DNA from: Anthoceros angustus
Taxonomy: Eukaryota; Plantae; Anthocerotophyta
Assembly (NCBI GenBank): GCA_010909165.1
Contig: MU008162.1
Location: 1,922,001 to 1,986,000 of the forward strand
Reading direction: 5' to 3'
Length of the DNA: 64,000 bases
A model generated the notes under the pieces. It was given only the letters and a program-made list of their open reading frames with translations, did no database searches and had not been told where the DNA came from. Both the position numbers and the translations under genes were made by a program. Numbering within the stretch: position 1 is the stretch's first letter; every line of letters starts with the position of its first letter. Positions 61-48,514 of this stretch are shown here, piece by piece.

Positions 61-1023
61 CTAGTCGAACAGGCTGAAGCCCATGTCGTCGTCCGACTCT
101 TCAGCGGGTTCCGCCTTTTCTTCCTCCTTGGCCGCTGCAGCAGCGGGTGCAGCAGCTGCTGGTGTCTCCACCGGAGCGGCGGCCACCACAAATTTGCTCG
201 GGTCCTTCAAGTACTCCTTCACCTTCACCGCCTGAGGGAATGAGTAGCCTGTCTCAATGGCAATAGCCAACACGTTCTTGTAACTGTTGACGAAGAAGTG
301 TGGTGCTGCCGCCAGTGTCGGGTAGTTCAGACCCAGAGAAAGTGCTGCCACTGTCGATATTCCGGCAGTGAGCTTGCTCATCAAGTCATCTTCTGTCAGA
401 TCCAAGACTGCAGGATCGAACACCGACCCATTATCGTAGATGCTCTGAACCACGAGCCCGTATGAGAAAGGACGGATTCCCAATTTAGCCAACAAAGCAG
501 CCTCAGAGGACCCGACCTTGTCACCCTTCTTGATAAGCTCCACCGGGGCTATGATTTCCACAGTTCCCTTGTTGATTTTCGTGGGAATGTTAAGCACCTG
601 AAAGAAAGAAGTCTGGGAGGGATCCAGCCCAGTGTTCCCCGGAGGAACCACCACATCAATGGGTGCCACGAGACCCACACGGGCAGGTGCTCCCACCTTG
701 TACTTGGCAACCTCCTCCCTCACCTCCTTCAGATCACCCTTGGTGAAGATCAGACCAACGTTACCCACCAGCAACGGTATCAAATTCAAGATAGCTTCAT
801 TGCCCGTCTTCTCAGAGTGGATACGAATGGTCCTCTTCATCATCGTGTTTTTTCCCATCAACACCACAGACTCGGGCCTCAACCCCTTCCTGATGGCCTG
901 CAACTGATTGGATCCAACATTGTCGGCGGCACAAATCAGGACCTGATTGAACTCCTCCAATAGGTCGCACATCTTCCTGTCATACGCCTGTTTCTTCTCC
1001 TGCTTGGTACCCTTGAAACCCAT
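61..1023 (-). CDS. RPLP0: 60S acidic ribosomal protein P0 (uL10), single coding exon
   Basis: 320-aa ORF with [37 protein letters not shown], an Ala-rich hinge and the P-protein C-terminus [13 protein letters not shown]. Confidence 0.98.
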
Positions 1024-4232: not shown

Positions 4233-4471
4233 ACCCCGCCTCCGTTAATTGGACGTCTCCAACCAGCCACAGGCAGCGCAGGGATCTCAACCATGAATTA
4301 TTTGTTGTGAGGGGCACAAATCGCCCCTTTTGTACATCGGCTGGGGCGTCATAGCCCCCAGATTTTTCAGGTCCTAAAAACAGCTATCGTGAAGAGACAC
4401 GCCTACAATTCCGAGCGATCTTAGGTCCAGTGTGGCACCCTATCCAAATTCCATTCCTAGGATGCTATCAC

Positions 4472-4960
4472 CTATTTGCCTACTCTATCTGCGCGCCCTT
4501 CTCCGACTTGGCCGCTTGGCTGTCCTGCTTCTTGTGTTGTAGGAAGCAAAGGAGCCATCTGGCCAGACCCATCAGCTGTGCTGATACCAATTTTCGGGTC
4601 AACCAGCCATTGGGTTCCGACCACGCCTGTCTTGACCAGGCTACTGGCCGGCATGTTCCTCTTCCGAGAGGGTTCAATCACCAACCCACCCGCTTCCTCC
4701 TTGCTGCGCTCATACACTTTCTTGATCAATTCGATATCCCAATCCTGAGGCTTCGCTCTAATTCCCTCGCCTGGTTGCTTGTCCTTCAGCTGGCGAGCGC
4801 ACTCCTGCACCAGTCCTAGGCTCACATAATTCCACCGCTTCTCCATGAAGCCAAGCCCCAGCTCCTTCACCAATTCCCTAGCTCGGACCTTCCAATGGTC
4901 CATATTATTCCATGCCACATTCGCAGCGGCCTTGGCGCCATGCTCTTGCCGTAACCTCAC
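4472..4960 (-). mobile_element. Retrotransposon-associated accessory ORF remnant
   Basis: 162-aa ORF between gypsy fragments with no recognisable host homology. Assigned by context only. Confidence 0.35.
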
Positions 4961-7099
4961 TACCCTTGGCGCTCGAATTGGCGACGCCCCTCGAATTTCC
5001 TAGCAGGCGGCCTCCTGTGGTTCCTACCTCCTCAACAAACGCCGCCGCGTGGCGCCCGCCTCCCTCTGGCGAGCCGCGACCTCGTGAGGATTTGAAGCCG
5101 CCTCCGTGGTGCGCCTCGCCTCCTTTCGATCGGTGCTCCTCCAACAGCACTCCTCGGCGCCACAACACTCCCGGCCTTGCTCCTCCTGCTCCAGTGCTGC
5201 CGCCCCACTCTTCGACGCTGCTCCAGCCGCCATTGCGCTCCACCGTTTGAATGAGTTTCTGTTTCCCCCCCGGGTTCTCTTAGGGTTAAATTCCCCTGAC
5301 TTCCCCTACCGGGATAAAGATAAATTATCCTGTAAGCTACGTTTACCTAGGTTATAATTAGTAATATGAAAGGGTATTATGAAACATCATAATTAAGTAG
5401 TATATAAGACATCTTTTTTGTATTGAGAACATAACATAAACATTTTTCTCTTGTGATAATAAGTTCCTATCTCGTGAGTTTCCTCTCTCGAAACTTATCA
5501 GGCTGGATGCTAACTGGCTTGTGCCATGGCAGCAACTCAATGACATGATCTACAGGGCGTTAGGGAGGGAGTTTTGTTGGGTCTGCAAATACACGAACTC
5601 CTAAAGAATGACTTCATGGAAGGTGGGAGCGATCCTCATGAGCCTTGGCCTCAACGGCCCTTTCTTCCGTTCCTTCAGGCATGATTCTTTTAGCTTTGCC
5701 CGGATACAAGAATTTGCAAGCGGTTGCTTTTATTGAAAGTGGACCTGCAACCAAGCTTTATTAAGAGTATATTGCTCACTCTGCATGATGTATGTCTTGT
5801 TCCCTTTCGTGAGGTTGAGTCGTTGGACAGCCAATAACGTGATAATCTTGGAAGGGGTTAATATACAAACCCCTTCCGACAACCGAAACCCCTTCACAAA
5901 AAGACACCGTTTGAAATGCAAAATCGTCGAATCCTCGTCATGACACCATGCTAATTGGACGCCTCCAACCAGCCACAGCCACAGGATCTCAACCATGAAT
6001 TATTTGTTGTGAGGGGCACAAATCGCCTTTGTACATCGGTCAGCGCCATAGCCTCGCATTTTAGCCCAAATTAGCGATTCAGGCAGGTGGCACCCTATCC
6101 AAATTCCATTCCTAGGATGCTATCACCCATTTGCCTACTCTATCTGCGCCCTTCTCCGACTTGGCTTATCGTCCCGCTTGTGTTGTAGGAAGCAAAGGAG
6201 CCATCTGCTGCACTCCATCACCGTGTCGATACTAATTTTCGGGTCAACCAGCCATTGGGTTCCCGACCACGCCTGCCTTGACTGTGGCTACTGGCCGTGC
6301 TCCTCTTCCGAGAGGGTTCAATCACCAACCCACCCGCTTCCTCCTGCGCACACTTTCTTGATCAATTCTGATATCCCAATCCCGAGGCTTCGCTCTAATT
6401 CCCTCGCCTCGGTTGCTTGTCCTTCACCGGCGAGCGACTCGCACCAAATTTAGGCTCACATAATTCCACCGCCTCCATGAAGCCAAGCCCCAGCTCCTTC
6501 ACCACCCCTAGCTCGGACCTTCCAATGGTCCATATTCGCCATCAAGGCCACAATTTCAGCGGCGGCCTTGGGCGCCATGCTCTTGCCGTAACCTCACTAC
6601 CCTTGGCGCCTCGAATTGGCGACGTCCCGCCTCGAATTTCCTAGCAGGCGGCCTCCTGTGGTTCCTACCTCCTCAACAACGCCGCCAAGAGCGCCCCATG
6701 TCATGAGCCCGCGCTACCGCTAGTGAGGATTTGAAGCTGCCTCCCTCCGTGGGTGCGCCTCGCCTCCTTTCGATCGGTGCTCCTCCAACAGCCAGCCTCG
6801 ACGCTTGCTCCACCAGCCTCGACGCTTGCTCCAGCCGACGCCCCACTCTTCGACGCCGCTACCGCCATTGCGCCCACCGTTTGAATGAGTTTCGCTTTCC
6901 GGTTCTCTTAGGTTAAATTCTCGACTTCTACCGGATAAAGATAAATTATCCTGCTACGTTTACCTAGGTTATAATTAGTAATATGAAAGGGTATTATGAA
7001 ACATCATAATTAAGTAGTATATAAGACATCTTTTTTGTATTGAGAACATAACATAAACATTTTTCTCTTGTGATAATAAGTTCCTATCTCGTGAGTTTC

Positions 7100-7460
7100 C
7101 TCTCTCGAAACTTATCAGGCTGGATGCTAACTGGCTTGTGCCATGGCAGCAACTCAATGACATGATCTACAGGGCGTTAGGGAGGGAGTTTTGTTGGGTC
7201 TGCAAATACACTGCCGAACTCCTACAGCAATGACTTCATGGAAGGTGGGAGCAGATCCTCATGAGCCTTGGCCTCAACGGCCCTTTCTTCCCGGGTTCCT
7301 TCCAGGGCATGATTCTTTTTAGCTTTGCCAGATACAAGAATTTGCCGAAGCAGTTGCTTTATTGAAAGTGGACACTGCAACCAACTGTTTATTAAGAGTA
7401 TATTGCTCACTCTGCATGATGTATGTCTTGTTCCCTTTCGTGAGGTTGAGTACGTTGGAC
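7100..7460 (-). mobile_element. Ty3/gypsy protease-RT linker and RT start (duplicate at ~5480-5830)
   Basis: Minus strand reads LL*EFGSVFADPTKLPP*RPVDHVIELLPWHKPVSIQP, typical of the gypsy RT N-terminus, preceded by NVLNLTKGNKTYIMQ. Confidence 0.75.
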
Positions 7461-7989
7461 AGCCAATAACGTGATAATCTTGGAAGGGGGTTAATATACA
7501 AACCCCCTTCCGCACAACCGAAACCCCCTTCACAAAAAAGACACCGTTTGGGAAATGCGAAATACGTCGAATCCTCCGTCAACAGCACCATGCTAAATAC
7601 GAAAGGGGAAAAAAACATTGATATTTCACAATTCATAAAACAAAGAGGCATCTACTGGCTGGCCGCCGCCTGAGTATCCTTGCCCACGGCTATGCTTTGA
7701 CACAAGTAATGAAAGAAAATCCGATATCACGCTTTCAAAACCCCTTTCCCTCGAATATAGTCTTTCCTCTACAAAGATCCTCAAAGTGACTGATCCGAGA
7801 CTCATCGCGCTTGGTGGCTTCAATCTAAAACAACGCCAGTGCGCATGCTCCAATTCTACTACAAGCTGCCTCTGCCAGGCCTTCGCTTCATCATCTTCTT
7901 GTCGCCTGGTCCTTGCCACCACTCCTGCCGCACAGATCTGTGGTTTGTTGTCCTTCCTCTAGCAAGTCCCTGCTTATGCTTTCATCCTC

Positions 7990-10900
7990 CTTGCACTAAG
8001 TGGAACCACCGAGCTTTCAAACAATTTTTTCGCTAATACAAACTTCTTTAGCCTGACAGGCCGCCTCTCCGGGCCTCGAATGTGAGCTCCTTCCAGGCAA
8101 AACCTCAAAACCATGTATGCGTGGGATATAACCAGCACAATGGATGTTGTCCCACCTCTAATCCAGAGAATGTTTTGATGAATTTCATCATCAACCCGAG
8201 AGGTCTTTGGTAGGCACACCACCATTTTGTCTTGAGACATGTACACCGCTTCTTCACCATGATCATGTGCAATCACGGATCGTCCATTGTTAAAAGTCCC
8301 TCAATATTGGGCGCCATAGCCGCTCTTGCCGCCCTTCACACACCAAGCTATGTACTCCACGTCTCAAATCCACCTGTTACTCATGTTTGTTTTGTCCCAA
8401 ACGAAGGACACCATTCCACCCTTGCCACATAATCCACGCATGCACTCTCTCACAAGGTGAGCTTCTTCCACTCACATGACAATGAGCCCGAATTCTTCCG
8501 CCGTCTTCTCCTCGAAGCTTTGGAAACTGTGTTCATCATGCCCGATCCAACCGACTATCCATAGGACCAATGTCAAAGCCTCTTGGGACATCCATAACCA
8601 AGGGTATAAGCCCGTCAAGGAATCCCGCATCTCCATAATGTTTCTTTTTCCACTTGATAGTAACACTCTTTCTCGCACAACAAATGAATGTGCGTCCGTC
8701 TTTCAAATCCTTGTCCGATTGCACCGCTCATCCTCAAGACTCTTCCAATTGTTAATCTCAAATATGAAGTTCTTGAAATCCTCAGCTTTTGCAAATTCTC
8801 CACATCCTTTATTTGTCAACGCCGTGGAAAGAAAAACGAGCAGGGACACCACATTCCTATTGTATTCAAACAAGCGACGATGACGGGAGGGTGTGAAAGC
8901 GACGCCACCGCCGCCCTTCACACCTCCATCGACAAATTTGGTTTGGAGTGCACATGCCAGCGCCGGCGCCGGCGCCCGCCGGCCAGAGGTAGAGCAGGAC
9001 GGCCGACATGGGCGCCGGCGCCGTGACATGTGCCTCAAGATCAAGGGGGAGGCACCCGCCCCCCACTATCGTGCCATTCTCTCAGACAGATGTGGCGCGG
9101 CCACGCCTCGCGAAACAAAAACCAAAGCGACTCATTGTCAGTGGTGACGGATCTCACCTTCCCAGCAAAAGCCGTTTGAAATCGAGCAATCATGTCGTCC
9201 GTTGAGTGTAGAGGATATTCCTTCCTCACTTCCTCGAAAGATGAGCACTCCAGATGTTTAGCCATGGCCACTTGAATAACATGCGTCTTTCTTGAAGTAA
9301 TTTCGTCCTCCATTCCTTTGAGATCGAGGATGCCACAAGATCTTCCCCTTGCCGTGACAAGAATCTGCCCACATTCACTGGTATACCTCGGAATGATTTC
9401 CGTGGTTTCATGAGCATGTCTTCGGCTTGAAATACACTTCCACGTGTTTGGGATCATCCGTGACTTTCCTTTTCCCTTCCCTTTCTTGCGCAGGTATGTG
9501 CTTCTTCCGCCTGTAACTCGCCGCTTCCCACTTTGAAAAGATCTTATCAATATTATCCCATACCTTGCCCTCCCGCCGAGATGCAGATGTGTGTCCCGTT
9601 GTCCACTTTGTTCGCTTGTACACGCCATCTCCTTCATCATCTTCAATTAATCCAAGAACCTTATAAAGATTGAACTTCCATGACATGGTCATCACTCCAT
9701 CCCGACGCCGCAATAAGAAGCTCATCTCGTAAATATCTTACTTCAATAAAAGACATTTTCTTCCGCTTGTCGACATTGTGTTATGGTCTTGCAAGAACTC
9801 TCATCTCACCGTAAGCCCACAGATACATGCGCTTCAACATATTGAAAGCAGGACTTCCAGCAATATCGCCAAGTGCTTCATAGCAAGATATGTGTGGTTC
9901 CCCAAGTACACCCATAATATATTTCTTGGCAATCGCCATCCAACTTGCTAATATCGTTGCACTCCCGGGTCAATCATGCATGAATGGCGAACCCTTCTTC
10001 AATCCTTCCTTGAAATAACTCGGGCTAGGTAGTTTGACCATGCCTCGTCCACCCTCCCGATTTGGGCATCGGTGTAATAAAAGATCGGCTTCAAATTCTC
10101 AAGCTTTACCAAGATCGCCTCCGAACAACTTTCTTGCATAGGCGAGTCCCCGATTATTGTCAATGGGTCCGATTCGGATAGCATCTTCAAGTCTTTCCTC
10201 ATCTCGCACATGGACGCTACTATCCCTGGTGGGCTTCACTCACGCTTTCCTTCCTGGATTTCTTCTTTCTCTTCTGGAGCCTCGGTGTGAGCGATCGGTC
10301 AAGGCGTGCCCACCATGCCTTGCTCTCCCACTCGAGTCCCTGTCTCCATACTCTCGGATCGGCGGACACAGGAGGTGCCTCAGAACGCACCGCCCACCGC
10401 CGACCCACCGTCTCTTCCGCAACAAGTGGCGTCAGATGGGCCGGCCGCCGGCGCCAACCCTTCGTGCCTTGGGAACCCGAAACCGCTTGGGGTCCGTGTA
10501 ACCGAGTCTCAAGACTTACTCGGAGGGCGCCGCCGGCGCGCCCTCCTCCTCGGCATACTAATCGGGTACCTCCATGGAGGAGCCGGAAAAGGAATGTCCA
10601 AGAACGGAGCATCCTTCCATCCTCTCGCCTCCGAAAGTCGCCATCGCCGAGTGGGACGCCGGTATACACCCATCCTCCTCATCGGATGGGCCGAGCTCAC
10701 TAGCCGCTGCGCGCGGCCCATCATGCACATTCGTCGCCGGGCTCGACTGTCGACATTTCCTCCTATCTTTGGATGACGGATTCGGTAATCTTCCGCATAT
10801 GGTCGTAATTAGTGCTCTAGCTTCGAGCATCCAAAACAGAAAAGGATTGAGGAAAGGCAAGATAGGCACAAGTCATGGAAACCAACATACCACGATTTGC

Positions 10901-11900
10901 ATCAAGCTTGAAAACCTTATTCCAAAGTTTTACTTAGCTATCGACGATAGCATTTCAAATCCTCCACCAGTTTGAAGGATCACTTCTTGCTTTGGAAGCC
11001 ATGTGGTGACCTCATAAGCCTTGTACATGGTTTCATCTTCGCTTATCCGATCAAATACCAAAGGCTTTGTTGTGCAGATAAAACATTCTCGCCCATCCAT
11101 ATCCACGCCCATAGAACCCAGCCCTTGCTCTGGTTTGGCAAGGCCCCTTGAACCCTACGACCCAGGTTTCAATAGAGGAGTCCAAAATTGTTCTCCTCAA
11201 GGCTCCTCATCTGTGTCAACATCTAGTCCTTCTTGAGCAGAACATTGGCCTCCACCTTGCTCCCCAACCGCCGTATGGCAAGAGTATCCTCATAGTTAAA
11301 TGGCGTTGGAATAGGCGGCACCGATTGCCTGTGGGGTCTCTTCCTCGGTCTCCTCCTGCAGCCTTCTCCTTCTAGCCGGCCTTCCCGGATGTTAGGCCGA
11401 TTTCCCATGCCCAATTGACAAATTACCTCGTGGCGGTGCTTGATGGCCTGGTTGTATCTCGCGCCTCCACCGGAGGTAGGCCGCGCCTTCTCCAACATCC
11501 ACACACCCGCCGCATCCTTCTTCTTGCCGGGCCGGGATTTCTTGGTTTTGGGCATCGGGTCGATGTTCGCCTCGTTCTCCACGCCTTCCTACTTGCCTTC
11601 CGCTTGCCATCCTCAAGAGATTAGATACAATCGCCATAGGAAGTAGCAATTCAAAGAAGGAATCGCACAACTTGAAGGAAATTTGCGAGCAAGGGGAGGG
11701 CCATACCAAGACTATGTGAATCGCGAAGAGGAAATGGCGGAGGATCGCGTAGCGGAGAAGTCGCGTCGGGAGACGCCAAAAGTCCTTCGCACGAGAGTTG
11801 ATCTCGAGGCGGCCGCCACCGTCCGTCTGGCTCGAAGAACTTGCCTCTCTCGTGGTTACTCCACTTGAATCGAAAGTATGACGCCCGCTCGGTCACGCCA
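7990..11900 (-). pseudogene. Degenerate large accessory gene with a C-terminal N4C/N6A DNA methyltransferase-like domain (~8010-8620)
   Basis: Across frameshifts and stops: LVMDVPRG...W...GLIVM*VEEAHLV...FVWDKTN...VEYIAWCVKG...AYQRPLGLMMKFIKTFS...DNIHCAG...CLEGAHIRGPE...FVLAKK. This is the beta-class amino-MTase motif order. Confidence 0.55.
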
Positions 11901-14099
11901 CATGTGCAGCAACCCTAACCATAAATGTCAATTAAGGAAATGATTACGGAAAACCATTTATAGGACCCTAAGTCAAAAGCCGCATATGTGAACCCCAATG
12001 CCGAGAAAACAATGAAGAGGCGGTGCCTCGCAGCCAAGTTCTGAAGATCTTTCGGTTTATTTGCTCATAATGGCATTTCCACCTTACCTTCACCACGGCC
12101 TATGTCATGTCATACCACGCCTGTGAAGAGTGAGGACCATATTTGATTTATAGAGGTGCGGAGTCCTCGTGCCGGCAATGTTGCGCGCCACACACATCAC
12201 TGTCAAGAGGTCGAAGCGTCCACAAAGTTCATTCCGCACTCACAGCGATCAAGGGGAACATGTACTTGAGAACAAGTGTTGGGTTTGCATCGCCTCCGCC
12301 TCTGCTCACCCATGTAATGACCTCATTGATGTTGTCGCAGCAGAAATGTTGTGACCCTACTAGAAAAGGGCACCTTATGGGATGTTGCAATTTTTGTTAC
12401 ACTTCCACATTGCAACATGTTTTGAGGGTTGGTATTAAGTTTGTTAGTTCGTCCCGCTTGGTGCAGCCATCTTAACACGAACCCGCACTCTCTTCCCACC
12501 TCCCCTTCCGGTACACCCTCTCACAAGCATTGTTAATTTCACCGCTTACATTACCGTGTTGCAATTTTATGTACCACTTCCAACTTCCAGCATGGTTTGA
12601 TGGCTTGGTGTTAAGTTGGTCCATTCTTTCTCTTCCTTCCCACCATCCTAACACAATGCTTGGTCTCTCACTTCATGTACCACTTCAAAATTGCAACACT
12701 TTATGGTGGCTTGGTGTTCAAGGTGTCCTTTTCTTATCCACTTCTCACCCCATCTTAACACAATACTTGGTCTCTCTCCTCTCACCTCACCCTCCTATTT
12801 ATTGCCCCTTATCACACCCTTTTATACTCTTTCACTTCTCCTCCTCCTTCATGACCGTGAGAAGGACCTCCCTATCACACCATTTTATACTCTTCCACTA
12901 TTCCTCTTTCAACTTGCTTGTTACAATGACCTCTCCGCCTTGGGCTGTCCTTCCTTCCTTTTACCTCCTTTGCATATACTCAATATACATATATATGTTT
13001 GTAGGTTTCAAGACATAAGTATGTGTACGCTTATATGTACACATCCATCTTATACTTCTATTATATTAGTGTATTTACATGCCTCTTTGTATACGTATAC
13101 GTACGATATAGGCATCAAGACTTGTTTATATAATAATATATATGTGCTAACCCTTACGTCACTCTACCTTATATATCTAAGTGTTTGATTTTATTGACAA
13201 TTTAAATCAAATTTTTGGACACTTCAATCCCCTCTATCCCTTGCGCCTTTGTTTCCACCGATGCAATACGAACTCCACGTGATATGGGCATATGCGTCGC
13301 GGCACCACCAACATGTGCCTCGAAGAAGCGACGCCACGCCACTTGGTGACTCTGCACCAACACCAATGGTTTCGTGGTTCCTCCACATCTTCCTACACCT
13401 ATCCAAACTCTATAACCACTTTCACACCATGCATTTGCCATGTCAATGCTAGGTGGGTAGACCAATTCTCTTGTTGCTAATTGACCATCACCGTCCACCC
13501 ATGCACCGACTCCATCGTCCGCAGGAAAACATCTCTCGACCATTCACATTCCTCCACAGTGCGAGGAAGAGGGTCTTTGATTTCCGGATGGTAGGTGACT
13601 CTCTGTGAGGAGCCAAGGATGGTCAGATCGAATGGGGCCCCGCGCCCTTCCCGATCATGAGCAACAAAACGAGTCCGAACTTAAGGTTAGTTTGCCTTCA
13701 ACAAGAAATGTTTATGCGGTGAAGACAATGTTGTGGCCGAATAGTCCACCCCATCCGTGGCGGATTCCATCTCATGCACACCGCACGGTGGTATTGCGGT
13801 GTGCCGCCGCCATCGACAAGCGCCCTCTCCATTCCGTGGGTGCCCATGACCCCTGTGAACTTGAACTTATATGCTCGCCATTGATGGAATCGCATCCAAA
13901 GCGAAGACACCGTGAAGGAAGGGAGATGGGGTGCAAAATCTGCCGTGGTTTGTTCCGCCAAGGAGCGATGCAGGATGACCGCAGGATCGAGTTCTTCCCA
14001 CAAGCAAATGATCCGTGGATCGAGGATGGGGATGATGACTTTGTTCACCCTCCTCTGGTGCATCCGGAACATTCCATCCCAAGCCTTTAAGTGAGACAT

Positions 14100-16797
14100 T
14101 GATGACAACAAAGTCATGACAAGCGCATGCGACGGCAGTGTCTTTGCAAAATGTGAACTGGAGAAGGTGAGACTTTCTTAAACCGTGTTGCAACCAAATG
14201 TGCATGCAGAGGTTGACCAAGCAAGGCCTTGAGCAACGATATAGGTTCCTCACAATGTGCGGCAAAGCGAGACATTTCTTCAAAGCCTCGTACATCGGAC
14301 CCGAGTCAAACTAACAAAGAAAGAGTTTTACGCATGTTATGGGATCGGTTCCTGCTACTGCGTGAAGGCCTTCGAAGAGTATATTGTATGGGGGGCAATG
14401 ATACGAGGCGAAAGGGAGGGTCATGAGGAATGCCCGTGGGATAGTGTTCAACCAACCCAATTCATAAGTCCGTCATGCACTTGGTGCTCTAGCGTGGATG
14501 GATAATGCTTTTGCTCATGGCGAAAGACTTCAACGGGTGTATAACGCGACACCTATACAAATGGAGATATGGTCATTGTACAACAGCGGTGTCAAAGCTC
14601 GTGCAGCTTTGACGTCGCGTGGTTTTTGAAGTTATGGAAATCTAACTTCACGTGAAGATTCCCAAATCCAACAGTTCTCGACCGCTCAATATGTGCAGGT
14701 TAAAGACCACCATTCGAATACAACTCGGAAGGTTGATCAAGGTAGATATCACTCTACCACTAGTACAACCCATCTACGGTGGGAGGAGTTTTCGTGTTCA
14801 TCCCATAGTTCGCCGAATGAGCTGGTATGCGGATGGTTCGGAGTGTCGGGTGGGGTGGCCGCGCCCACCTCGGATGATCGACCTGCATCAAGTTGCTCGA
14901 GTACCATGATTGAAACTCGCAGTCCTTCATGGATGGCCCCCTGGTTGTAGGTTTGATTGGTCGAGTTTGTAGGTTCGGGCCCGGGCGGCCCCGGCGCCAT
15001 CCACCTTCAAACTCGCCAACCATAATACATGACCTAGAAGGTGGACGTTTTGTAGATTTTAGATTGCGGAAGATGGTAAAGGTATGTGTGAAGAGGTGCT
15101 AGTCCACGACATCGGTTTGTTGTATGCAATGGGTTTCATGGATTCTGTCTTCGCTTGTGGTATGGAAGAAGCGTGTTTGTATGTGTGAAATTGGGAACGT
15201 GATAAACTTGGAAGCATGTGAAACTTGGAACGTGTTTGGCTGTGGACAGAAAAATATCATGCCGCGTTGGAGGCACACCGCATGCAGCTGCAGGAGGAGC
15301 GGGGAAAAATGGCAAAACACCGTGAAAAGAGTTACAGGGAACCGGATAAGTACATGCTCCTCGCTATACGGAATGGACCAAGAAGACCGAGATTCCACAC
15401 TTTCTGCGTTGGCCAAAGAATCTTGATGAGGATGTATCATGCCGTGGGTTGCATGATCCACAATTATACGTGCAGCAAGAGTGTTTTTGCACTATGCCAA
15501 TTTGAGGAACGATCACTCGACAATCGGATTATTCAAGATGTTATTCTTAATTATAAAGGAGTGCTACCCAAAGTGCTCTATTTGACAACACTTGGGAAAA
15601 CAAGAACCATTGTTTGCGTATTTGAACATGCTAGTTGATATGGGAACTTTTCGGAAGGTGAAGGTTGGGTTCCTCCTTGTTGGGCACACTCACGACCAAA
15701 TCGACGGATGTTCTCTTGCTTTTCCAAAAGCTTGAAGCACAAGGAGGCACACACTCTTCCGCGTTGGCCGACATCTTGGTTCATGCATACGCCTACCGGA
15801 GATCAAAGTTTTGCGAGGTCCGGACTTAGGTCATATGTATGGCCGATTAGACAAGGCGATGGTCGCCAGCATATTCATCGGCGGTGAGAAAATTGAACAA
15901 CTTATCTTTCCAGCTTTAAAATCACCAGAAGACAAACCGACTGTAGGCTGGTGGCGATGATTAGGAGCAAGCAATATTCGACATCGATGTATTGGGAAAC
16001 CGCCGGGTTGGAGTTTTTGAAATTTGTCCCCTCAACGACATAACAACTGTCGGCCCTCCGGCTCGAGACAAGAAAGGGACGTCGGCAGGTTATCTCCAAG
16101 GAGGAGCACATTTGAGAGCGGGTGCAGCTGCGCCATATGTGAGGACAATATGGATGGTGGGAAGCATTGGGTGGACCAAGAAGAAATCGCAATAATCGTG
16201 GAGAACAATATTGGGCTCGCACTAGAAGTGCCGTGGAAATGGTTCTCTCGCGGGAATCGGCGACAACACTCCAAGTTCCCATGAAGCTATCCTAGAGAGG
16301 CGTTGCTAAGAGAACTCCCCAACGGATATGTACTTGGGGCCTTACCAACTGGGAAGGCGGCAGAAATGGCACGTTGCATGGAGATGTAAAAGACATAAAG
16401 GAAGGATGTTCATCGCGGTACTTGTACCGATACGCATAATCGGCCTTTCTGGGTTGGAAAAGTTAATCAGGTGAGGTTGGATGTGGAAGAGCCTCATTTC
16501 CTGGTTCACTGGTTCAGGACTGAGCACACAGATGCATATGAAGGCAGATACGTGGAAGAATATGTGATTCGAGTCCCATCCACTGAGACAGCTGGGATTG
16601 GAAGGAAAAAGGGTGGGAAGGCAAATTTCCCGAAGAATGTTCAAGAAGTCTTCATCAATAAAACTGTCATCCTGTATTATGGGTTCAGTTTGAATTCCCG
16701 TAAACATCTCTATTCCATTGACAAAAAAGCGATCAGGGATAAGTTGAATGAATTGCGGGGCTTCATCGAGCCAGCCAAAGTGCACCAGAAGAAGTAG
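14100..16797 (+). pseudogene. Degenerate Sola-like (DUF7869-type) DDD/E transposase
   Basis: Frameshifted motifs: CCNQMCMQ (~14185), LEAHRMQLQEER..HREKSYREPDKYMLLAI-(D)GMDQ-KTEIPHF (15370), LPKVLYL-DN-WENKN (15575), FAYLNMLVDMGTFRKVKVGFLLVGHTHDQID (15682) and C-terminal RPFWVGKV..VHWF (16441). Confidence 0.75.
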
Positions 16798-19700
16798 CGA
16801 AGGCGGTGAGGACATCGGGCCCTTGGACATGGAAGGTGTCAATTCGGGAGATGAGTGAAAAGATGTATGAAGTGGAGGCAAACGGTGGACATCGGTGAAC
16901 AAGAGGGTTTACTCGACGGTGTGTGAAGTGTTAGGGTCAAAGTGGGAGCTCGCGTTAGTGATAGGGAATGACCTGGTGCTATCATTCGGTGGGGAAGTTG
17001 AAGAAGTAGGAGTCACTTCCCCTGGCCGTAGGTTGCAGTGTCGGCGACATGGACAAATGGCAGGGCGCCGGTGGGCCGGCGCCCTGCCATTTTTCACCAT
17101 CCTCTAGTAGCATGGAAACCGTTTTCCGCACCCGTCCTGCGTATTGTACATTTTGTTCGTTATATATAACCCATCCGTACGCATGCCTAAATCCTACATC
17201 GTGGAAACCCGATAGTTGGCGCCCGGCCCACGGCCTGCCTTCTTGCCAAAACAAAAGACTATGGGTTCGGGCGACGGTTCGGAAAGAAGCACCATTCTTT
17301 ACCAATGATGATGTGAAGATTGCTGCAATGTCTTCAAAAGACCTTGTTTATTTAGGCATGCCTCATCAACCCCGTTCCCTTTTAGTCCTTAGGGTACTTA
17401 TGGTAAGCAAGCATGGGTCGTATGCCAAATTCGATGGCGAACTCGCCCTAACCCTTTGTGTGATGGAACCGGACGTCAATTTCATCCCTTATCGACCCTT
17501 ATTTTCAGGCCTTTTGGGATGTTGCCCAAAGCGGTGAATCGACCCATCCCAAACCCCTTCCGACGATATTTGGATGAAAACCCCTTTATATTAACCCCTT
17601 CCAAGATTAGCATGTTCAATCTAGATCTATCTCTAACGTCTTTGGTGGCTAGCTGGGGCTTACAGATAATGAGATCATGGCAGGGAAGGCATTACCACAA
17701 AGCTTGAGAAACCACTTGGGAAGGTGATTAATGCATCATCCACTCTTCCTTCTTGGTTTCATGCTCTCCATGGCTATGACTAATGTGGACACATGTCCAG
17801 GATGCCGATCTGCGACCCTTTTCAGAGCTCTAGACACATAGTGATGGCGGCACCAAAGTCAAGCAACACTTTGGCACAGCTAACCTAACTTCCAGCAGTT
17901 GGCACATGGGTCAGGAAGCACTTCCTCATCTCCTTATATTCCTTCTTCTCCTCCTCCGTTGGAATTTTGAAGTTGGCTTCTTCTCTGATGCGTTGGCTGC
18001 CTTGCTCCACTTAGGCTTGGAAGGTCTTGCAGATGAGAGGTGCTTGTACTTGTTTGTACTATAGTTGATTGGCGCCTTTATCACCTTGACCAGAGTTGCG
18101 GGTTGGTTTGATTCACATCTGCCCTCATTTCAAATTTCAGTCCATCAATGAACTTTTTGACCTTCTGCTCCTCGTCCAACCTTGGCATGTCAAGTGTGAG
18201 TTATAGAAACTTGTCACGGTACTCTTGTACAGTGCCTTGCTAGAATATCTTCTTGAACTGCTGGTACAAATCCTTGCGATGATTCACTGTTAGGAATTGT
18301 TCCAAGAAAAGATCGGCTAGGAGTTGAATGAATTAGGGCTTCATCGAGCCACCAGCCAAAGTGCACCGAAAAGATAAGACGGTGAGGACATCGGGCCCTT
18401 GGACATGGAAGGTGTCAATTCGGGAGATGAGTGAAAAGATGTATGAAGTGGAGGCAAACATGGACATCTAGACAAGAGGGTTTACTCTCGACCGTCAAGT
18501 GTGTGACCGCCAAGTGTTAGGCTCAAAGTGGGAGCTCGCGTTAGTGATAGGGAATCACTGGTGCTATCATTCGTGATCGGAAGTTGAAGAAGTTGGAGTC
18601 ACTTCCCGGCCGTAGGTGAGCCCATGATGGCGGGCCGGGCGCCGCCCCGCCATTTTTCACCATCCTTAGTAGCATGGAAACCGCTTTTCCGCACCCCGCG
18701 TATTGTACATTTTGTTCGCAAATCAGATATAACCCATCCGACGCATGCCTAAATCCTACATCGTGGAAACGATAGTTGAAGGCGCCGCCCACCGGCGCCG
18801 AGGCCCCTTCTTGCCAAAACAAAAGACTATGGGTTCGACGGACGGTTCGGAAAGAAGCACCATTCTTTACCAATGATGATGTGAAGATTGCCTCGCAATG
18901 TCTTCAAAAGACCTTGTTTATTTAGATCTGCCTCATCAACCCCGTTCCCTTTTAGTCCTTCCGGGTACTTATGGTAAGCAAGCATGGGTCGTATTATGCC
19001 AAATTCTGATGGCCGAACTACGCCCCTAACCCTTTGTGTGATGGAGACACTGCTCCGGACGTCAATTTCATCCCTTATCGACCCTTATTTTCAGGCCTTT
19101 TTGGAGCGATGTTGCCCAAAGCAGCAGAATGCGACCCATCCCAAACCCCCTTCCGACGATATTTGGATGAAAACCCCCTTACTGTATATTAACCCCCTTC
19201 CAAGATTAGCATGTTCAATCTAGATCTATCTCTAACGTGCTGGTGTGCTTGGCTAGCCAGGGCTTACCGATAATGAGATCATGGCAAAGGGAAGGCATTA
19301 CAGTCAGCTTGAAAGCTTCAGCAAAACCACTTGGGAAGGTGATTAATGCATCCGTCCACTCTTCCTTGCTGGTTTCATGCTCTCCCATGGCTATGACTAA
19401 TGTGGACACATGTCCAGATGCACAGATCTGCAGGCCAGCCTTTTCAACAGTAGCTCTAGACACATAGTGATGGCTGGCACCAAAGTCAAGCAACACTTTG
19501 GCACAGGCACCAGCTAACCTAACTTCCAGCTTGATTGGCACATGGGTCAGGAAGCACTTCCTCATCTCCTTATATTCCTTCTTCTCCTCCTCCGTTGGAA
19601 TTTTGAAGTTGGCTTCTTCTCTGATGCGTTGGCTGCCTTGCTCCACTTAGGCTTGGAAGGTCTTGCAGATGAGAGGTGCTTGTACTTGTTTGTACTATAG

Positions 19701-19960
19701 TTGATTGGCGCCTTTATCACCTTGACCAGAGTTGCGGGTTGGTTTGATTCACATCTGCCCTCATTTCAAATTTCAGTCCATCAATGAACTTTTTGACCTT
19801 CTGCTCCTCGTCCAACCTTGGCATGTCAAGTGTGAGTTATAGAAACTTGTCACCAGCATTTTGCCTTGCTAGAATATCTTCTTGAACTGCTGGTACAAAT
19901 CCTTGCGATGATTCACTGTTAGGAATTGTTCCAAGAAAAGCTGCCTGAAGATCGGCTAGG
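16740..19960. repeat. Staggered tandem duplication (~16740-18320 and ~18325-19960), indel-dominated differences
   Basis: The transposon right end, TIR and gypsy protease/gag are present twice in the same order. Confidence 0.8.
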
Positions 19961-21540
19961 AGTTGATTGGGGACTCCATACCAAGGTCGACTTGCCTCTC
20001 TTGTTGTCGCCACCATCAGTAGGCATATCCCTCCATTGACATCACACAGAATTGAATCTTCTGTAAGTCATCTTTATCAGAAGCAAGAAGGTATTTGTCA
20101 AGCTTGTCTAACCAATCGCGCACGCTTTGAGCATCCTTCGCTCTCTCGTCAAATGTTGTGGTCTTGACTTTTCATTGCAGTTCCTTGTCGAGCTGGGGCT
20201 TCGGTTTGAACATGTATTCTTCTCTTCCCTGCACTTCTCCACCCAATTTCCCTCGTCGATGTTCCCAGTGCTTGCACCTCATCAATTGTAAGAGTCTCAC
20301 CATTGCCTTAATGTCTTTGTTATCTTCTTCTCCAGGTTGAAGCTCCACTACAAGTTTCTTCAGCTCTTCGTCCTCCAAGCTCAACTCCCGCTCACCTGGA
20401 ACTAACGGGTATAGTCTCTCTCCTTCTCCTTGGATTTGGTGCCCCAAAAATTGTGCCGACTAATGGTGTAGAGACCTGAGTCCCTTTCACATATGGCACA
20501 TGTATGGGCGTCACTACATCTGGAGATGGGGATTGGTGAGCGCCTGGGGGCGTTGATTGCTCTAGCGTCTGGAGCATATGCCCTCCAGCTGCCTCTCCAG
20601 ACGGGCCTGGCCCTCCCCCACTTGAATCTCAATCTGATTGACGGCTTGCTCCACCTTCTCCATTTGTTCATCTTGATGGAGTATGGATGAGTGTAGTTCG
20701 TCGCAAGTACGCTTGACATCGGCTATCCTTTCCTCAAATTATCACCAAGCTCCATCCCGGCTCGCCTTGGCTTCATGTCCAACCCGTGGTTCTATTGCAG
20801 TGCGTGCAGGTTGTCGCAGGTTGTCGGTCGAAGCCCCTCGCTTCCTTGGTCGTCCGCGTTGCCGCACCACTAGCTCGGAGGTGTAATCGACGGGCGCATT
20901 CGCAGTGTTCGAATCTGCACCAACCTAGTGAGATTCTGTTTCTACCCGGACCCCATGCCGGCGTGAGATTTCTTGGCGCTTGCGATGATCAACCGTTGCT
21001 TGTCCGAGCGCTTGGATGTCGGTCAGGCGGCCCTCTGCTGGGTGATGGGATTGTTGTCGTGCTCAGCAATGCACCCGCTCCCCGATCCCTTCCAAAGGGT
21101 GGTCTTCGTCACTCGCGCTCGAGATCACCCTGTCAACCTCCTCAGGTTCGATGCAATCACTCATGTTGTCTACTTGCTTGGGAAGATCACTGGATTTTGG
21201 GTTGATTACTTCCTAGAAGTCTCCGGCACTGATTAGCGGTTGCGATCCAACACCCTCAATGTAGGGTAATCCTCAATCTCTCAACTGATCTCCTTTGGCG
21301 AAGCTGGTCCACAGGGTGTGGAAACAAAGTTGGAATTGGCAAGCCCGAAAGGCAAGATTTCGGCACTCACGACCTTTTTCTGTGCTTCCTCCCTTCTAAT
21401 CAATCCCCGTCACTGGCTGGGCTTTGCAACAGATTGTTGCTTCCACATTTTGGCACGTCGCAGTTGAGCCTACCCAGATTCTGCCTACCTGTCGCGATCC
21501 TGGATCAAGAGTGGCTAGCACAGATGGCTCTGATACTAAA
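17609..21540 (-). mobile_element. Ty3/gypsy gag-protease region with Met-tRNA PBS
   Basis: Retropepsin VLLDFGASHHYVS...DLIIGKPWLAKH (19215-19646), gag-like RLDEEQKVKKFIDGLKFEMRADV, and PBS reverse complement GCTCTGATAC(T)A at 21527-21538. Confidence 0.85.
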
Positions 21541-22307: not shown

Positions 22308-23561
22308 TAATTAGCTTATTTATCTGTAATTAGCCTATTAATCCTATTTATCAGCTGATTGTACATACGAATATACGGATACCTCATAGGATTCCCGCTA
22401 CGTGGCCGTATATGACTATGGTGGCTTTGGCTTTGAGGCTGTTCCTTGTGGATGATGTGAGTGTCAGATGTGAGTGGCCAGCTCTATGTCGCTTGTTTCA
22501 AAATGCCTTAACGAAATTTGATCTTCGTGAGCTTCAAAAACTGTTGTTTTTTTTAGTTGATTAGACCACGTATTCACTCCTACTTAATTTAGAAGAGCCT
22601 GAAAGATTTTACAGTAGAAGAGATGACCAAGCATGAGGCCTTGGAGACCCTTACAATTCCATTGGGGCTGAGATCATATATCTGGCAACCCCTAACCTAA
22701 GGGCCTCTTAAAACCAATCTTTTATTGCGAGCGAGACAGCAGAGATCATATATGAGGCGATCCCGAGGTCTTACCTTCGCAAGGACAAGCTTCCCCATTT
22801 CACTACATCCTACACTACTTTTAGCCTGCCTAACAAAACCATGTGTATTTTCTACTGTTTGTATTGTATTAGTTAAATATTTTTTATCCATAAGTAACTA
22901 AAACTTTACTACATAAATTGATAAGTTGAGCATGGTCCGACAAGCGAAACTAGTGGTTTCTTGACCACCATCATATTTCACAAAATAAGTTTAAATCATA
23001 TACAATTTATTGAATAAGTAGAGATGGTTGAACCAATTAACCAGCAAGTAAGAATCACCTTGTGAATTCACTGGAAATCAAGGTAATATTTTTTGTACTC
23101 ATGAATATTACATAAAATTTAGTTACCAAATATGATATATTTAATTATCTTGTGTCATATGATAAATATGCGGTTAGGATTTGAAATTTGTTAGGAGATA
23201 AAATCTTGAAAAATACTTGTTGTACCGTCTTTCTTTGAATTCTTGTCTATGTGATAACATGCGACTCAAGTTGCATTAGCTGAACTATTTCATAGTAGAC
23301 TCCAATAAATTTCTTCTTCACCTTATAGTGATCCAGAAAGGCCTATTTTGATCATCTGTCTCACATGGAACTGCAATCATATGGCCTCGTCCGATGTAGC
23401 CATATATCAACACTGTGGTTAAAGAATGAATTGGTTTAACTCCCCTAAAGGACCAATGTCGAAGACAATCAGTGTATACATTGAGAATAATGTGTTCAAC
23501 TATGAAACTATGATAATGCAGTTGGTTACTCATGCAATTTGATGCATTAATCTTCTTTAAT

Positions 23562-35300: not shown

Positions 35301-37980
35301 TTTTAGCCTTATGCGGATCCTCCTAATCTGATTCTGAAGATTGCGACTCCGGATTTGGTTAACACCTCAGCGAACCCGCAACCTTCAGATCCAGCATCTT
35401 TCTTGTGGGATCAGCTTGAGCAGACAACACAATATATTTGGTGGACCTTGGTTTTATGCTCAGATTAGGAAAGCTTCGAGGTAGATAGTGTGCAAGCTCG
35501 AGCAAAGCAGGATCGGGTTAGTCTAAGAACTTTGTGGGTGGTCGTGACTTAGAAATTATTGCCTCCAAAGATTCAATAAAGATTGGCGGCATCTTTATTC
35601 AATAAAGACTAGCGAGATATCAATTTGATATCTCATCCTTAATTCTAATGCTTTTCCCATTGTGGTCATAACTTCACGGCCTCGTGTTCGATTTAGCCAT
35701 TTTTGAAGATGGCCGAGTCCTACTCCTCCTCCACCACAACTCCAGTTCCAAAACAACCAAAAAAGATCCGACACATTCCCTTTAGATCATTCCATACCAA
35801 AAGGAATTGGACTGCTCAAGAAATGTCAAGGAAGATCCTTCGACTTTACAAGAGGCATACTTCAGACCTGAGGTAGCCAAGTGGAAGCTAGATGTGGATG
35901 ATGAGTAGTACAACTCATTAATCAAGAATAACACTTGGACTTTGTTAACTGCCCAAGAGTAGAACCATCGTGGTATAAATGGGTTCTTAAAACTAAGCTC
36001 CGGTGGAGGTAGAGCCTAGGATCCGGCAAAGCTAGATTAGTGGCTAAGGATTATAGCCGGAAAAGGAGATGACTATCAAGGCAATAAGGTCTACTATGGA
36101 ACGCAAAGTTTGGGCAACCAAATTAAAAGAGCAAGACAAGTTTGATTTTTTGGCTAAAAACGATTGAAGAGGAGCATGTGAAATTTTCGAGAACCTTGAA
36201 GCAGTTGTAGGATATTGTTAGGAAGTCAAGAGGATATCCCAGAAAAGAACGGGTCAAAACGACCCCGTGAGAGAGGCGTAATGGCAAGAAGAGGCGGTAT
36301 CATCATGTAGGGTCGCCACCACGCGTAGGTCGAAAAGAGCATCCACGGTAGGGTGAGATAAAATCTCGAAAGAAAATTAGAATAAGGAGAATATCCACTA
36401 TATATGCTCATCAATAGGGAATAAATATATAGATTAATTAGGGTAGCGCTAGAATAGAAAATATTTAGATAGGATTGGGATCATTTGCCCGCCCAGCTGC
36501 AGAAAGCCGAGCCAAACACCAGGCGCTCGCGGAAGTGGAGGGCCTTTTCAGGTGACACATAGCCGCAGGAACAATGGCGTAAGCCGCCTTTTATGAAACA
36601 ACAACGTTGCCACTCTGAGGGGCCTGAGCCGGTGCAAACCCGACTTTTCAAACATTTCAACCGGTTCTCTGAAGCTGGGTTCACATTTGAAGACCTTGGA
36701 GTCCCTCAGGCCACCATCCGTTATCAAGATTTAACCTCCACCATCTTTGATTTGCCTCATGCTCGTGTTGGACATATTATCCATTTTAGCCTTATACGGA
36801 TCCTCTAACTGATTACAAGATTGCGACTCGGTTTGGTTAAACCCTCAATGAACCCGCAACCTTGTGATCCAAGATCTTTCTTGTGGGATCGAGCGGCATA
36901 ACACAATATATTTGGTGGACCTTGCATTTTGCGTTCGCTGATTAGAAAGCTCGAGGTAGATAGTGTGCAAGCTTCTGAGCAGCAGGATCCGGGTTTGGTC
37001 TAAGAACTTTGTGGGTGGCTGTTTGACGGAAAGGGGTATTATTGCCTCCAGTATTCAATAAAGATTGGCGGCATCTTTATTCAATAAAGACTAGCGAGAT
37101 ATCAATTTGATATCTCATCCTTAATTCTAATGCTTGTTCTCGGCATTGTGTCATAACTCTTCGTCGGCTCTCGTGTTCGATTTAAGCGTCATTTTTGAAG
37201 ATGGCCAGAGTCCTACTCCCTCCTCCACCACAACTCCAGTTCCAAAACAACCAAAAAAGATCCGACACATTCCCTTTAGATCATTCCATACCAAAAGGAA
37301 TTGGACCTGTTCCGAAGAAATGTCAAAAGGGAAGATCCTTTGACCTTACAAGAGGCATACTTCAGACCTGAGGTAGCCAAGTGGAAGCTAGATGTGGATG
37401 ATGAGTAGTACAACTCATTAATCAAGAATAACACTTGGACTTTGGTTAATCTGCCCAAGAGTAGAACCATCGTCAAGTATAAATGGGTTCTTAAAACTAA
37501 GCTCCAGGAGGTAGAGCCTAGGATCCGTTACAAAGCTAGATTAGTGGCTAAGGATTATAGCCAGAAAAAGGGAGATGACTATCAAGGCAATAAGGTCTAC
37601 TATGGAACGCAAAAGTTTGGGCAACCAGTCCAAAAGAGCCAGAAGACAAACAAGTTTGATTTTTTTTGGCTAAAAACGATTGAAGAGGAGCATGCCAGGA
37701 AATTTTCTGAGAACCTTGAAGGGAGTTGTAGGATATTGTTAGGAAGTCAAGAGGATATCCCAGAAAAGAACGGGTCAAAACGACCCCAGAGGCGGAATGG
37801 CGGTCAGAAAGGTGGTGGAGACTACCATGAGGTGCCACCCACTGATGGTGAGCAAAGCGGACTACCACGGTGGGTGCTAAAATCTCGTAAAGAAAATTAG
37901 AATAAGGGGAATATCCACTATATATGCTCACCAATAGGGAATAAATATATAGATTAATTAGGGTAGCTAGAATAGAAAAA
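32345..37980. repeat. Overlapping staggered duplications (32345-33960 / 34030-35700; 35090-36480 / 36590-37980)
   Basis: The same blocks recur two to three times with indel-type differences. Confidence 0.8.
37340..37585 (+). mobile_element. Ty1/copia RT N-terminal fragment (degraded duplicate at ~35850-36080)
   Basis: WKLDVDDE*YNSLIKNNTWTLVNLPKSRTIVKYKWVLKTK...YKARLVAKDYSQKKGDDY. Confidence 0.85.
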
Positions 37981-47900: not shown

Positions 47901-48514
47901 GAGCAAAGACGGTTCGGTGTCCATGCCTCGAAATCCCGTGCTGTCAAAACGACTTGCTGCTCAGTGGGTGCGGTTTCAGGAAAGCCAAAACTACCATTGG
48001 AAACGAAGAAATTAACAATATGGTATGATACTGCAATCTGGATAGTTTGTGCCAATTGAAGAAACCACAGCAACTCACCTGTCATCTTGGATGAAGAGCT
48101 CAACTTGATACCAGTGCCTTCAGGACCGAGTGAGCAACGAGCTACCACCTGTCATCTTGCGTGAAGAGCTCAACTTACTACCAGAGCCTTTACACACCGA
48201 GCGAGAAACGAGCTACCACCTGCAAGGAAGAAATATTCCATGTTCGGGAACGGCCTGTCGACCTGTGCCGGTCTTCTACGGACCTCTTTCTCTCATCGCG
48301 GTATTCCCTGCTGTGTTACTTACAAACATGCTAGTCCGCGAATGACGGTTCCAAAGAGAAGCAAACAAAGAGCACAGACAAAGACATACACAATGCTTCG
48401 CACGGGGCACCAAATACAATCGCTGTCAAAAAATTATTGCATCGCATAAGAACGTAGTGACAACACACCCTCAGCAGGTGCTGCAGCCGCAGAGCTACTT
48501 GTGTACTTCCTACC

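Follow-up and report, generated by a model that had tools for sequence, protein, structure and literature searches.

Results

A two-gene transposon in the Anthoceros angustus genome

The window analysed here is a stretch of 64,000 nt from Anthoceros angustus (Anthocerotophyta; GenBank assembly GCA_010909165.1, contig MU008162.1, positions 1,922,001 to 1,986,000 of the forward strand). Window positions 7468-17616 are occupied by a 10,149-bp transposon of the cut-and-paste type, which carries two genes in divergent orientation between terminal inverted repeats (TIRs). Gene 1, on the + strand, encodes a transposase with the Pfam domain DUF7869, and gene 2, on the - strand, ends in a domain resembling beta-class DNA amino-methyltransferases of the N6_N4 type (PF01555). 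An earlier note, made from the sequence alone, had proposed a two-gene, TIR-bounded DNA transposon of about 10 kb at this site, which is what was found; the span given for it (7476-17608) placed the element correctly but not its limits, which lie 8 bp further out on each side.

A repeat search identified inverted repeat arms of 22 nt at 7468-7489 and 17595-17616, 91% complementary and 10,105 nt apart, in agreement with the 22-bp TIRs noted before. When the sequence was read directly, the match was seen to continue inward of these arms. Self-comparison of the window revealed that each terminus, together with its outer flank, had been sequenced twice, and when the cleaner right-end copy (at 19215) is used, the TIR extends without gaps to 33 nt, 31 of them identical. 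Since both sequenced copies of each end agree on the two mismatches, at positions 4 and 7, these are real. The tetranucleotide CAAT flanks all four end copies, giving a target-site duplication (TSD) of 4 bp. Eleven copies of the TIR core, GGAAGGGGGTT, are present in the window where 1.4 are expected, a count not reached in any of 100 shuffles, and every occurrence lies no more than about 280 bp from an element end or its duplicate.

Gene 1 encodes a DUF7869 transposase

At 15586-15732 (+) a stretch of 49 codons was assigned to Pfam DUF7869 (E=1.1e-10; 41.9 bits, cut-off 26), and the piece that follows carries the profile on in another frame. Eight relatives align to 15249-16770 by tblastn. A hidden Markov model (HMM) built from 15 full-length relatives (924 profile positions) gave collinear + strand matches at 14177-14281, 15252-15584, 15598-15708, 15705-15764, 15909-16037, 16162-16266 and 16429-16758, the three best with E-values of 1.6e-17, 2.3e-16 and 6.3e-15. 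Together they cover profile positions 146-874 in at least six frames, with a core at 15252-15764 (GHTHDQID at about 15690) and a C-terminal block containing RPFWVGKV at 16429-16758. Because the profile is covered nearly end to end, the transposase gene is essentially full length, though spread over several frames. The description of this gene as a transposase remnant was right as to transposase; its appearance as a remnant may be an artefact of error-prone sequence.

The transposase gene lies head-to-head with gene 2, the two being separated by 2 kb; a direct tandem repeat of 106 bp (12566-12776, 76% identity) lies between them. Named relatives of the transposase are hypothetical 'DUF7869 domain-containing' proteins of the ferns Ceratopteris richardii and Adiantum nelumboides and of the liverwort Riccia sorocarpa (many copies), and many further relatives are unnamed proteins from ENA, JGI and Logan data. 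Relatives show signs of recent activity: some have uninterrupted transposase ORFs of 865-908 aa, and clusters hold up to 34 members that are nearly identical. From its transposable-element context, DUF7869 is presumed to be a transposase of the DDE type. Elsewhere in the window, a frame at 23327-23389 (-), '...DDQNRPFWITIR', aligns with the C-terminal (RPFW) block in the profile of DUF7869 (independent E-value, iE, 0.002); this short stretch lies in a repeat shared with 57727-58660 and may be part of a different element within this superfamily.

Gene 2 and its domains

A phmmer search with the 201-codon frame 9044-9646 (-) against 1.84 billion proteins returned three short proteins, all from Logan assembly SRR33208241; the best, P0001 (E=2.4e-9, 51% identity), corresponds to the middle segment of gene 2. 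Relatives bearing PF01555 align collinearly to window 9998-8050 (-) by tblastn, which upholds the earlier description of a large - strand gene ending in an amino-methyltransferase-like domain. Gene 2 could be followed upstream to about 10000, and its remaining upstream part would lie between about 10000 and 13500. Since no piece of the window reaches Pfam significance for it, the methyltransferase-like end of gene 2 is recognisable only through the relatives. A profile of this domain, searched against 3161 translated window pieces, had its two best matches at 8165-8215 and 8379-8465 (-), in profile order and with a third collinear match at 8566-8601. GGTT at 8156 (-), found in a scan for GxGT-type sequences, is probably a remnant of motif I, the loop that binds S-adenosylmethionine (SAM). 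A motif scan found no DPPY in gene 2; DPPF at 14422 (-) was taken as a chance occurrence, since it lies on the opposite strand within the presumed N-terminal stretch of the transposase. No methylase was found when the piece 7977-8300 was compared by tblastn with 50,697 phage records.

Gene 2 consists of a variable charged N-terminus, a GGxHS...DHN domain, a helical middle and a C-terminal PF01555 methyltransferase domain of bacterial or phage type; its length of about 850 aa refers to the annotated Riccia copy. The N-terminal domain was matched in the window by its own profile (A3) at the collinear positions 9812-9865, 9712-9774 and 9504-9692 (iE 2.3e-6 for the last). It is marked by the motifs YV(I/L)GG(S/N)HS...A.DHN and VW...IF..WE, with Y-V-x-G-G-x-H-S, A-R, E, A-x-D-H-N and V-W...D-x-I-F invariant, and its profile finds 89 proteins, including one from Ceratopteris and two Ginkgo gene models. 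It has no significant match in Pfam and none by profile search of the PDB. DUF6551 was matched below threshold in five of 14 members (best E 0.009), and a ParB-like fold was not substantiated, the Pfam matches being sub-threshold and the PDB profile search empty.

The two-gene layout recurs in other genomes

The earlier note had suggested looking for the same linkage in other genomes, and it recurs in Riccia and in three further assemblies, two from ENA and one from Logan. In the 9.1-kb sequence L003 (Logan SRR33208241) a DUF7869 gene (1.7e-49) stands head-to-head with a run of ORFs that ends in PF01555 (7e-10) and includes, upstream of it, a segment matching the middle domain of the window gene 2. 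In L004, also from Logan, the matched middle segment is followed by PF01555 (5.3e-15, profile positions 76-217 of 221), and P0007, a single ORF of 323 aa on L005, contains the whole domain (4.4e-13). The short-read copies L003 and L004 are frame-shifted within the methyltransferase domain, the former at ...VWHK/NV... and the latter further upstream; P0007 is intact, and this organism thus holds both decayed and intact-looking copies. Its copies form several families that are 68-73% identical in DNA.

In Riccia sorocarpa (locus L007; GCA_046195345.1, chromosome CM100794.1, 47 Mb) an annotated PF01555 gene (856 aa) and a DUF7869 gene (1076 aa) stand head-to-head at a distance of 820 bp. A perfect inverted repeat of 21 nt, its arms 11 kb apart, encloses this pair, which has an ion-channel gene on either side. 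The ENA sequences L008 and L009 have uninterrupted transposase ORFs of 865 and 908 aa, each head-to-head with PF01555-containing ORFs and with an apparent intron inside the methyltransferase domain. In L009 both genes lie between 31-nt TIRs that are 94% complementary and 8.3 kb apart, so that a methyltransferase between TIRs is also found in a related element, in agreement with the earlier reading; L008 gave no convincing TIR. In two gene models of Ginkgo, Gb_10123 (758 aa) and Gb_03516 (653 aa), the N-terminal domain of gene 2 is fused to PF01555. No partner gene was found among the gene calls listed for Ceratopteris. The relatives in other datasets are multi-copy. Protein identity is 22-37% for the Riccia and ENA copies and about 50% for those from Logan, and no DNA or TIR similarity was detected between the window element and L001, L003 or L004. 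Because the same layout is found in such divergent elements, the linkage of the two genes is old and maintained rather than a one-off capture.

This bears on the possibility that the methyltransferase is a passenger without a role in the element, that is, a host or bacterial fragment captured once in the manner of Pack-MULEs, or a contaminant. In its favour, gene capture by transposons is known to occur, and the great majority of PF01555 domains are prokaryotic. A passenger would not, however, be expected to keep its domain order and its head-to-head arrangement with DUF7869 in elements that share neither DNA nor TIR sequence; the apparent intron in the ENA copies and the position of the Riccia copy on a 47-Mb chromosome between ion-channel genes also speak against it, and we regard this explanation as very unlikely.

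Palindromes were seen in two of the relatives. In the intergenic region of L009 (6977-7288) a palindrome of 29-33 nt (…CAACTCGATACGNCGTATCGAGTTG…) is repeated in tandem, in several copies that overlap, and Riccia L007 has at least 10 copies of ACTGTATGCGCGCATACAGT scattered over 4300-14695; these palindromes might serve the transposase or the accessory protein as binding sites. The window copy has a single hairpin, of 20 nt at 17052-17095, and no palindrome family was seen in it.

The gene 2 domain has the fold of a beta-class amino-methyltransferase

Compared with the sequences of the PDB, P0007 matched beta-class amino-methyltransferases only (TTHA0409, DpnA/M1.HpyAVI, N4CMT, RsrI, MboIIA and CcrM), and with a family profile of 13 sequences the same matches improved to 1e-9 to 6e-7. 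An AlphaFold model of P0007 on the 13-sequence alignment had a mean predicted local distance difference test score (pLDDT) of 73 and a predicted template-modelling score (pTM) of 0.76; a model from a 6-sequence alignment (pLDDT 38) was not used. The methyltransferase-type Rossmann fold anticipated in the earlier note was recovered when the model was compared with the PDB by Foldseek, since the 38 best matches were all beta-class DNA amino-methyltransferases. CcrM was first (E=6.5e-12, template-modelling score 0.65, about 255 aligned columns), followed by M1.HpyAVI, MboIIA, TTHA0409, BceJIV, RsrI, N4CMT, PvuII and then METTL3. The N4CMT structures, with E of about 2e-9, thus rank below several adenine-N6 enzymes, as N4CMT also does in the profile search.

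The domain shows the motif order DxPxG ... QKP ... GSG(S/T)T (alignment A4), in which motif IV precedes motif I, and the order is collinear in the window. Motif IV reads DIPYGF in Riccia and in the ENA copies L008 and L009, and motif I is DLCAGSGTT in Riccia and DLFSGTG, followed by the apparent intron, in the ENA copies. In Ginkgo motif I is DPFSGSGTT, and motif IV was not seen because its exon is missing from the gene model. The Logan copies have DGCAGSGST and DLPRGL, and the window has DVPRGF at the position of motif IV. The permuted order, the (Y/T)QKP...L...I helix and the GSGTT SAM loop are shared with CcrM, M.MboIIA, M.RsrI, M1.HpyAVI and M.BceJIV. The plant domain differs from these bacterial enzymes in that identity to them is only 14-19%, motif IV is not DPPY, and the domain forms the C-terminus of a long protein (856 aa in Riccia), in some copies with an apparent intron.

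Sequence quality of the window

Six tandem pairs of about 1.2-1.8 kb each are found along 4-42 kb of the window (4246-41823 overall), starting at 4246/5952, 16742/18322, 25323/27055, 32348/34033, 35119/36617 and 39391/40574, with junctions 1.5-9 kb apart. The members of a pair are 82-87% identical, gap openings are about as frequent as mismatches and transitions as transversions, and perfectly identical blocks alternate with noisy ones. A genuine inverted duplication in the same window (44563-49206 / 56742-52172) has, in contrast, 124 mismatches against 22 gaps and more transitions than transversions. The differences within pairs fit overlapping uncorrected long reads with roughly 7-9% error each. 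Quite probably, error-prone long reads that had been corrected only in part make up about 4-42 kb of the window, their overlaps having been left uncollapsed. The whole element appears to sit in one such read (5952-18330), and the tandem pairs at its two ends are most likely a product of read overlap, not of element biology. The second TIR copies, at 5836 and 19215, were considered as a nested or second element and rejected, since the outer flanks are doubled too and carry the error signature.

Indel-rich error of several percent breaks every ORF, which explains why the longest stop-to-stop frames of the element are only 100-200 codons, and many frame shifts of this copy may be sequencing errors. 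The copy could instead be a dead fossil, both genes being decayed pseudogenes with genuine frame-shift mutations. Both are split over many frames, and some short-read relatives (L003 and L004) are frame-shifted as well, so that this is a real possibility, if short of a probable one. The error signature of the tandem pairs, so unlike that of the inverted duplication, argues otherwise, as does the nearly complete coverage of the transposase profile; read error of the size estimated would, moreover, break every ORF on its own. Given so error-prone a read, a decayed remnant cannot be told apart from an intact copy that was badly sequenced.

Table 1. Features of the transposon and of its duplicated ends (window coordinates).
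Feature	Position	Strand	Basis
Tandem pair: left flank and first 129 bp of element doubled	4246-5954 / 5952-7596		85.6% identity, 74 gap openings vs 83 mismatches
Left TSD, CAAT	7464-7467		same 4 bases at both ends
Left TIR, 33 nt, starts AACGTGATAATCTTGGAAGGGGG	7468-7500	+	31/33 vs reverse complement of right end
Left subterminal GGAAGGGGGTT copies	7501-7511, 7522-7532, 7739-7749	-	motif count
Gene 2, C-terminal beta-class amino-methyltransferase-like domain, frame-shifted	8050-8601	-	tblastn with relatives, profile
Garbled motif I, GGTTSIV then 'AGYIPRIHGFEV'	about 8170-8095	-	alignment with relatives
YQRPLGLMMKFIKTFS	8212-8165	-	alignment with relatives
YMSQDKMVV	8243-8217	-	alignment with relatives
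VWDKTNM	8441-8382	-	alignment with relatives
VMDVPRGFDIG, motif-IV position	8598-8548	-	alignment with relatives
Gene 2, conserved middle domain, GILDLKGMEDE...FQTAFAGKV	9149-9334	-	phmmer P0001
Gene 2, conserved N-terminal domain, frame-shifted	9504-9998	-	profile A3, tblastn
VWDNIDKIFSKWE	about 9560	-	alignment with relatives
GGxHS...DHN domain portion	about 9998-9780	-	alignment with relatives
Gene 1, DUF7869 transposase	14177-16770	+	Pfam, tblastn, family profile
Tandem pair: last 875 bp of element and right flank doubled	16742-18330 / 18322-19969		86.6% identity, 56 gap openings vs 65 mismatches
Right subterminal GGAAGGGGGTT copies	17368-17378, 17551-17561	-	motif count
Right TIR	17587-17616	-	repeat search and end-copy comparison
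Right TSD, CAAT	17617-17620		present in both right-end copies

Other features of the window

A ribosomal protein P0 gene at 64-1023 (-) is uninterrupted over 320 codons (Pfam Ribosomal_L10, RL10P_insert and Ribosomal_60s), and a fragment of a Copia-type reverse transcriptase lies at 37409-37897 (+) within the noisy region (RVT_2, 7.7e-11). The inverted duplication (44563-56742) has two 4.6-kb arms with 95% identity around a 2.8-kb imperfect palindrome (49151-51964). It carries two copies of an exon for ribosomal protein L12 (Pfam L11), at 48518-48967 (-) and 52412-52861 (+), and an ORF with a tRNA-intron endonuclease domain at 51002-51520 (-). An RNA-dependent RNA polymerase (RdRP) gene occupies 59474-63634 (+), with a match to RdRP of 7.5e-139 on the 759-codon frame 60317-62593 that continues over 62493-63431; since this gene is intact, sequence quality at that end of the window is good.

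Discussion

A transposon family with two genes

The element at 7468-17616 is, quite probably, a copy of a two-gene TIR transposon family that is also represented in liverwort, fern and Ginkgo sequences. The two-gene architecture recurs in independent genomes, and the C-terminal domain of gene 2 has a methyltransferase fold.

Several observations weigh against this reading or against an active enzyme within it. No second full copy of the element was found within the 64-kb window. The left arm of the Riccia element abuts an assembly gap that hides its terminus and any target duplication, and L009 is flanked by TTAT and TTTT, which agree at only three of four positions. When about 45 translated pieces of the element, from both strands, were compared with Pfam, only DUF7869 was matched, and no methyltransferase. 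The three matches of the methyltransferase profile in the window are weak singly (iE 0.1, 0.3 and 10), and all that is left of motif I there is GGTTSIV, garbled and interrupted by a frame shift. The canonical form of motif IV, (D/N/S)-P-P-(Y/F/W), was seen nowhere in the family, and in the lineage formed by the window and Logan SRR33208241, with D(L/V)PRG, arginine replaces the aromatic residue. Finally, the activity of N4CMT was abolished when Ser and Tyr of its SPPY motif were changed to Ala (APPA; PMC8885841).

The first of these points, together with further inverted repeats, of 14-23 nt, that occur by chance within the same 12 kb, could suggest that the TIRs of the window are themselves due to chance and enclose merely adjacent genes or nested unrelated repeats. 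Chance would have to account for a match of 31 in 33 nt, for identical 4-bp flanks and for subterminal repeats confined to the ends, and for TIRs that enclose the same gene pair in L009 and in Riccia L007, which makes this extremely improbable.

Is gene 2 a methyltransferase?

SPPY is associated with cytosine-N4 enzymes and DPPY with adenine-N6 enzymes (PMC8885841). Marchantia DN4MT1 has TSPPY. The earlier note had suggested a link to the cytosine-N4 enzymes of plants, which finds no support: the family has DIPYGF or D(L/V)PRG where those enzymes have (T)SPPY, and its motif of the Asp type, together with the fact that its closest structures are adenine-N6 methyltransferases, makes an adenine-N6 specificity more likely than cytosine-N4, as judged from sequence and model. 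N(I/L)PY is the working motif of adenine-N6 rRNA methyltransferases such as Erm and KsgA, and DIPY is therefore a plausible active motif. The suggestion that the element marks DNA with N4-methylcytosine (4mC) or N6-methyladenine (6mA) is, for this copy, doubtful, since arginine stands in place of the aromatic catalytic residue. D(L/V)PRG has nevertheless been kept at about 50% protein divergence, which argues for some selected, probably non-canonical role.

It could be that gene 2 is a pseudo-enzyme throughout the family, its methyltransferase fold serving only as a DNA- or SAM-binding module that, for example, targets or tethers the transposase or reads a mark. The missing canonical motif IV, in which I, L or V takes the place of the first Pro throughout, would be accounted for, as would the lineage in which the motif is conserved with Arg in place of the aromatic residue and the confinement of most Pfam matches to the C-terminal part of the domain. 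DIPY, on the other hand, retains Asp, one Pro and Tyr, and N(I/L)PY is functional in Erm and KsgA; Ginkgo and Riccia have an entirely canonical motif I, and the alignments of the model with active enzymes span about 255-280 columns. Loss of catalysis in all members is thus unlikely, though far from negligible.

A possible mechanism

The two genes are transcribed divergently from a shared intergenic region. In the mechanism proposed here, the transposase would bind both the 33-nt TIRs and the GGAAGGGGGTT copies in the subterminal regions, and would cut the target with a 4-bp stagger. The accessory protein encoded by gene 2 would bind DNA, and its DIPYGF members would methylate adenine or, less likely, cytosine-N4. 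Most members, with DIPYGF as motif IV and D(P/L)(F/C)(S/A)GSGTT as motif I, would have an active gene 2. In the D(L/V)PRG lineage the domain, to judge from its motifs, probably still binds SAM and DNA, with catalysis lost or changed. Methylation may be directed to the element's own or nearby DNA, where it would regulate transposition or counter host silencing. Binding of the transposase, or promoter activity, might be methylation-dependent, by analogy with bacterial IS10 and Tn5, which Dam makes dependent on methylation. Another option, as proposed for DAM-carrying retrotransposons, would be a chromatin state that escapes silencing by 5-methylcytosine (5mC). That an active enzyme, probably adenine-N6-specific, writes a mark other than 5mC for the control of transposition or for escape from silencing, with the window lineage as a derived pseudo-enzyme, is put forward tentatively, as possible rather than probable.

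Comparison with known systems

The transposase had been described as Sola-like. Sola elements (Sola1-3; Bao, Jurka and Kapitonov 2009) resemble the element described here in having short TIRs, a 4-bp TSD and one large transposase of the DDE/DDD type; of the marks of Sola, only the TSD was found to agree, in a comparison of descriptions. Sola elements are rare in plants, where Sola1 is known from Physcomitrella and Sola is listed among plant TIR elements, and the Sola groups had no Pfam model in 2017. Sola2 has 4-bp TSDs and has been reported with Fanzor1 as a second gene; the literature searched yielded no Sola element that carries a methyltransferase gene.

Bdelloid N4CMT and Marchantia DN4MT1 likewise place a bacterial-type beta-class N6_N4 domain in a eukaryotic nuclear genome. 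They are, however, host genes with SPPY or TSPPY and proven 4mC activity, whereas gene 2 is the accessory gene of a transposon, with another N-terminal domain and DIPYGF or D(L/V)PRG. DIRS, DAM-LTR and DNMT-bearing elements (dinoflagellates, charophytes) are mobile, have their own methyltransferase of prokaryotic ancestry and are thought to exploit or evade epigenetic control. In these class I elements the Dam-type or C5 enzyme lies within pol or an ORF; the window element is class II and has a separate, divergently transcribed gene of the PF01555 family. Fungal TET/JBP DNA transposons and the viral elements Mariner-2_PGv as well as Mariner-1_OLpv also combine cut-and-paste transposition with a base-modifying accessory gene, but they belong to other transposase superfamilies, encode a dioxygenase, Methyltransf_26 or a C5 methylase, and occur in fungi and algal giant viruses. 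The methylases of the viral Mariners were believed by their authors to be the first transposon-borne methyltransferases reported. In the full-text literature searched for DUF7869, and for PF01555 or N6_N4 with transposons in plants or eukaryotes, no description of this family was found, nor any report of a cut-and-paste element in plants that carries an N6_N4 amino-methyltransferase.

Implications

For the uncharacterised Pfam family DUF7869 there is now a link to an element that has TIRs and a target duplication of 4 bp. The pairing of a canonical-like motif (DIPYGF) with an altered one (DxPRG) within one family provides a natural comparison. The presence and origin of 6mA or 4mC in plants are debated, and Marchantia DN4MT1, regarded as a bacterial acquisition, is the only established plant case. 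A beta-class methyltransferase that is borne by a transposon, conserved and multi-copy is a concrete and testable candidate writer for plants. The elements are also a possible vehicle for the spread of methyltransferase domains and, if the proposal made here is correct, would be a mobile source from which plant genomes could acquire such domains of bacterial type.

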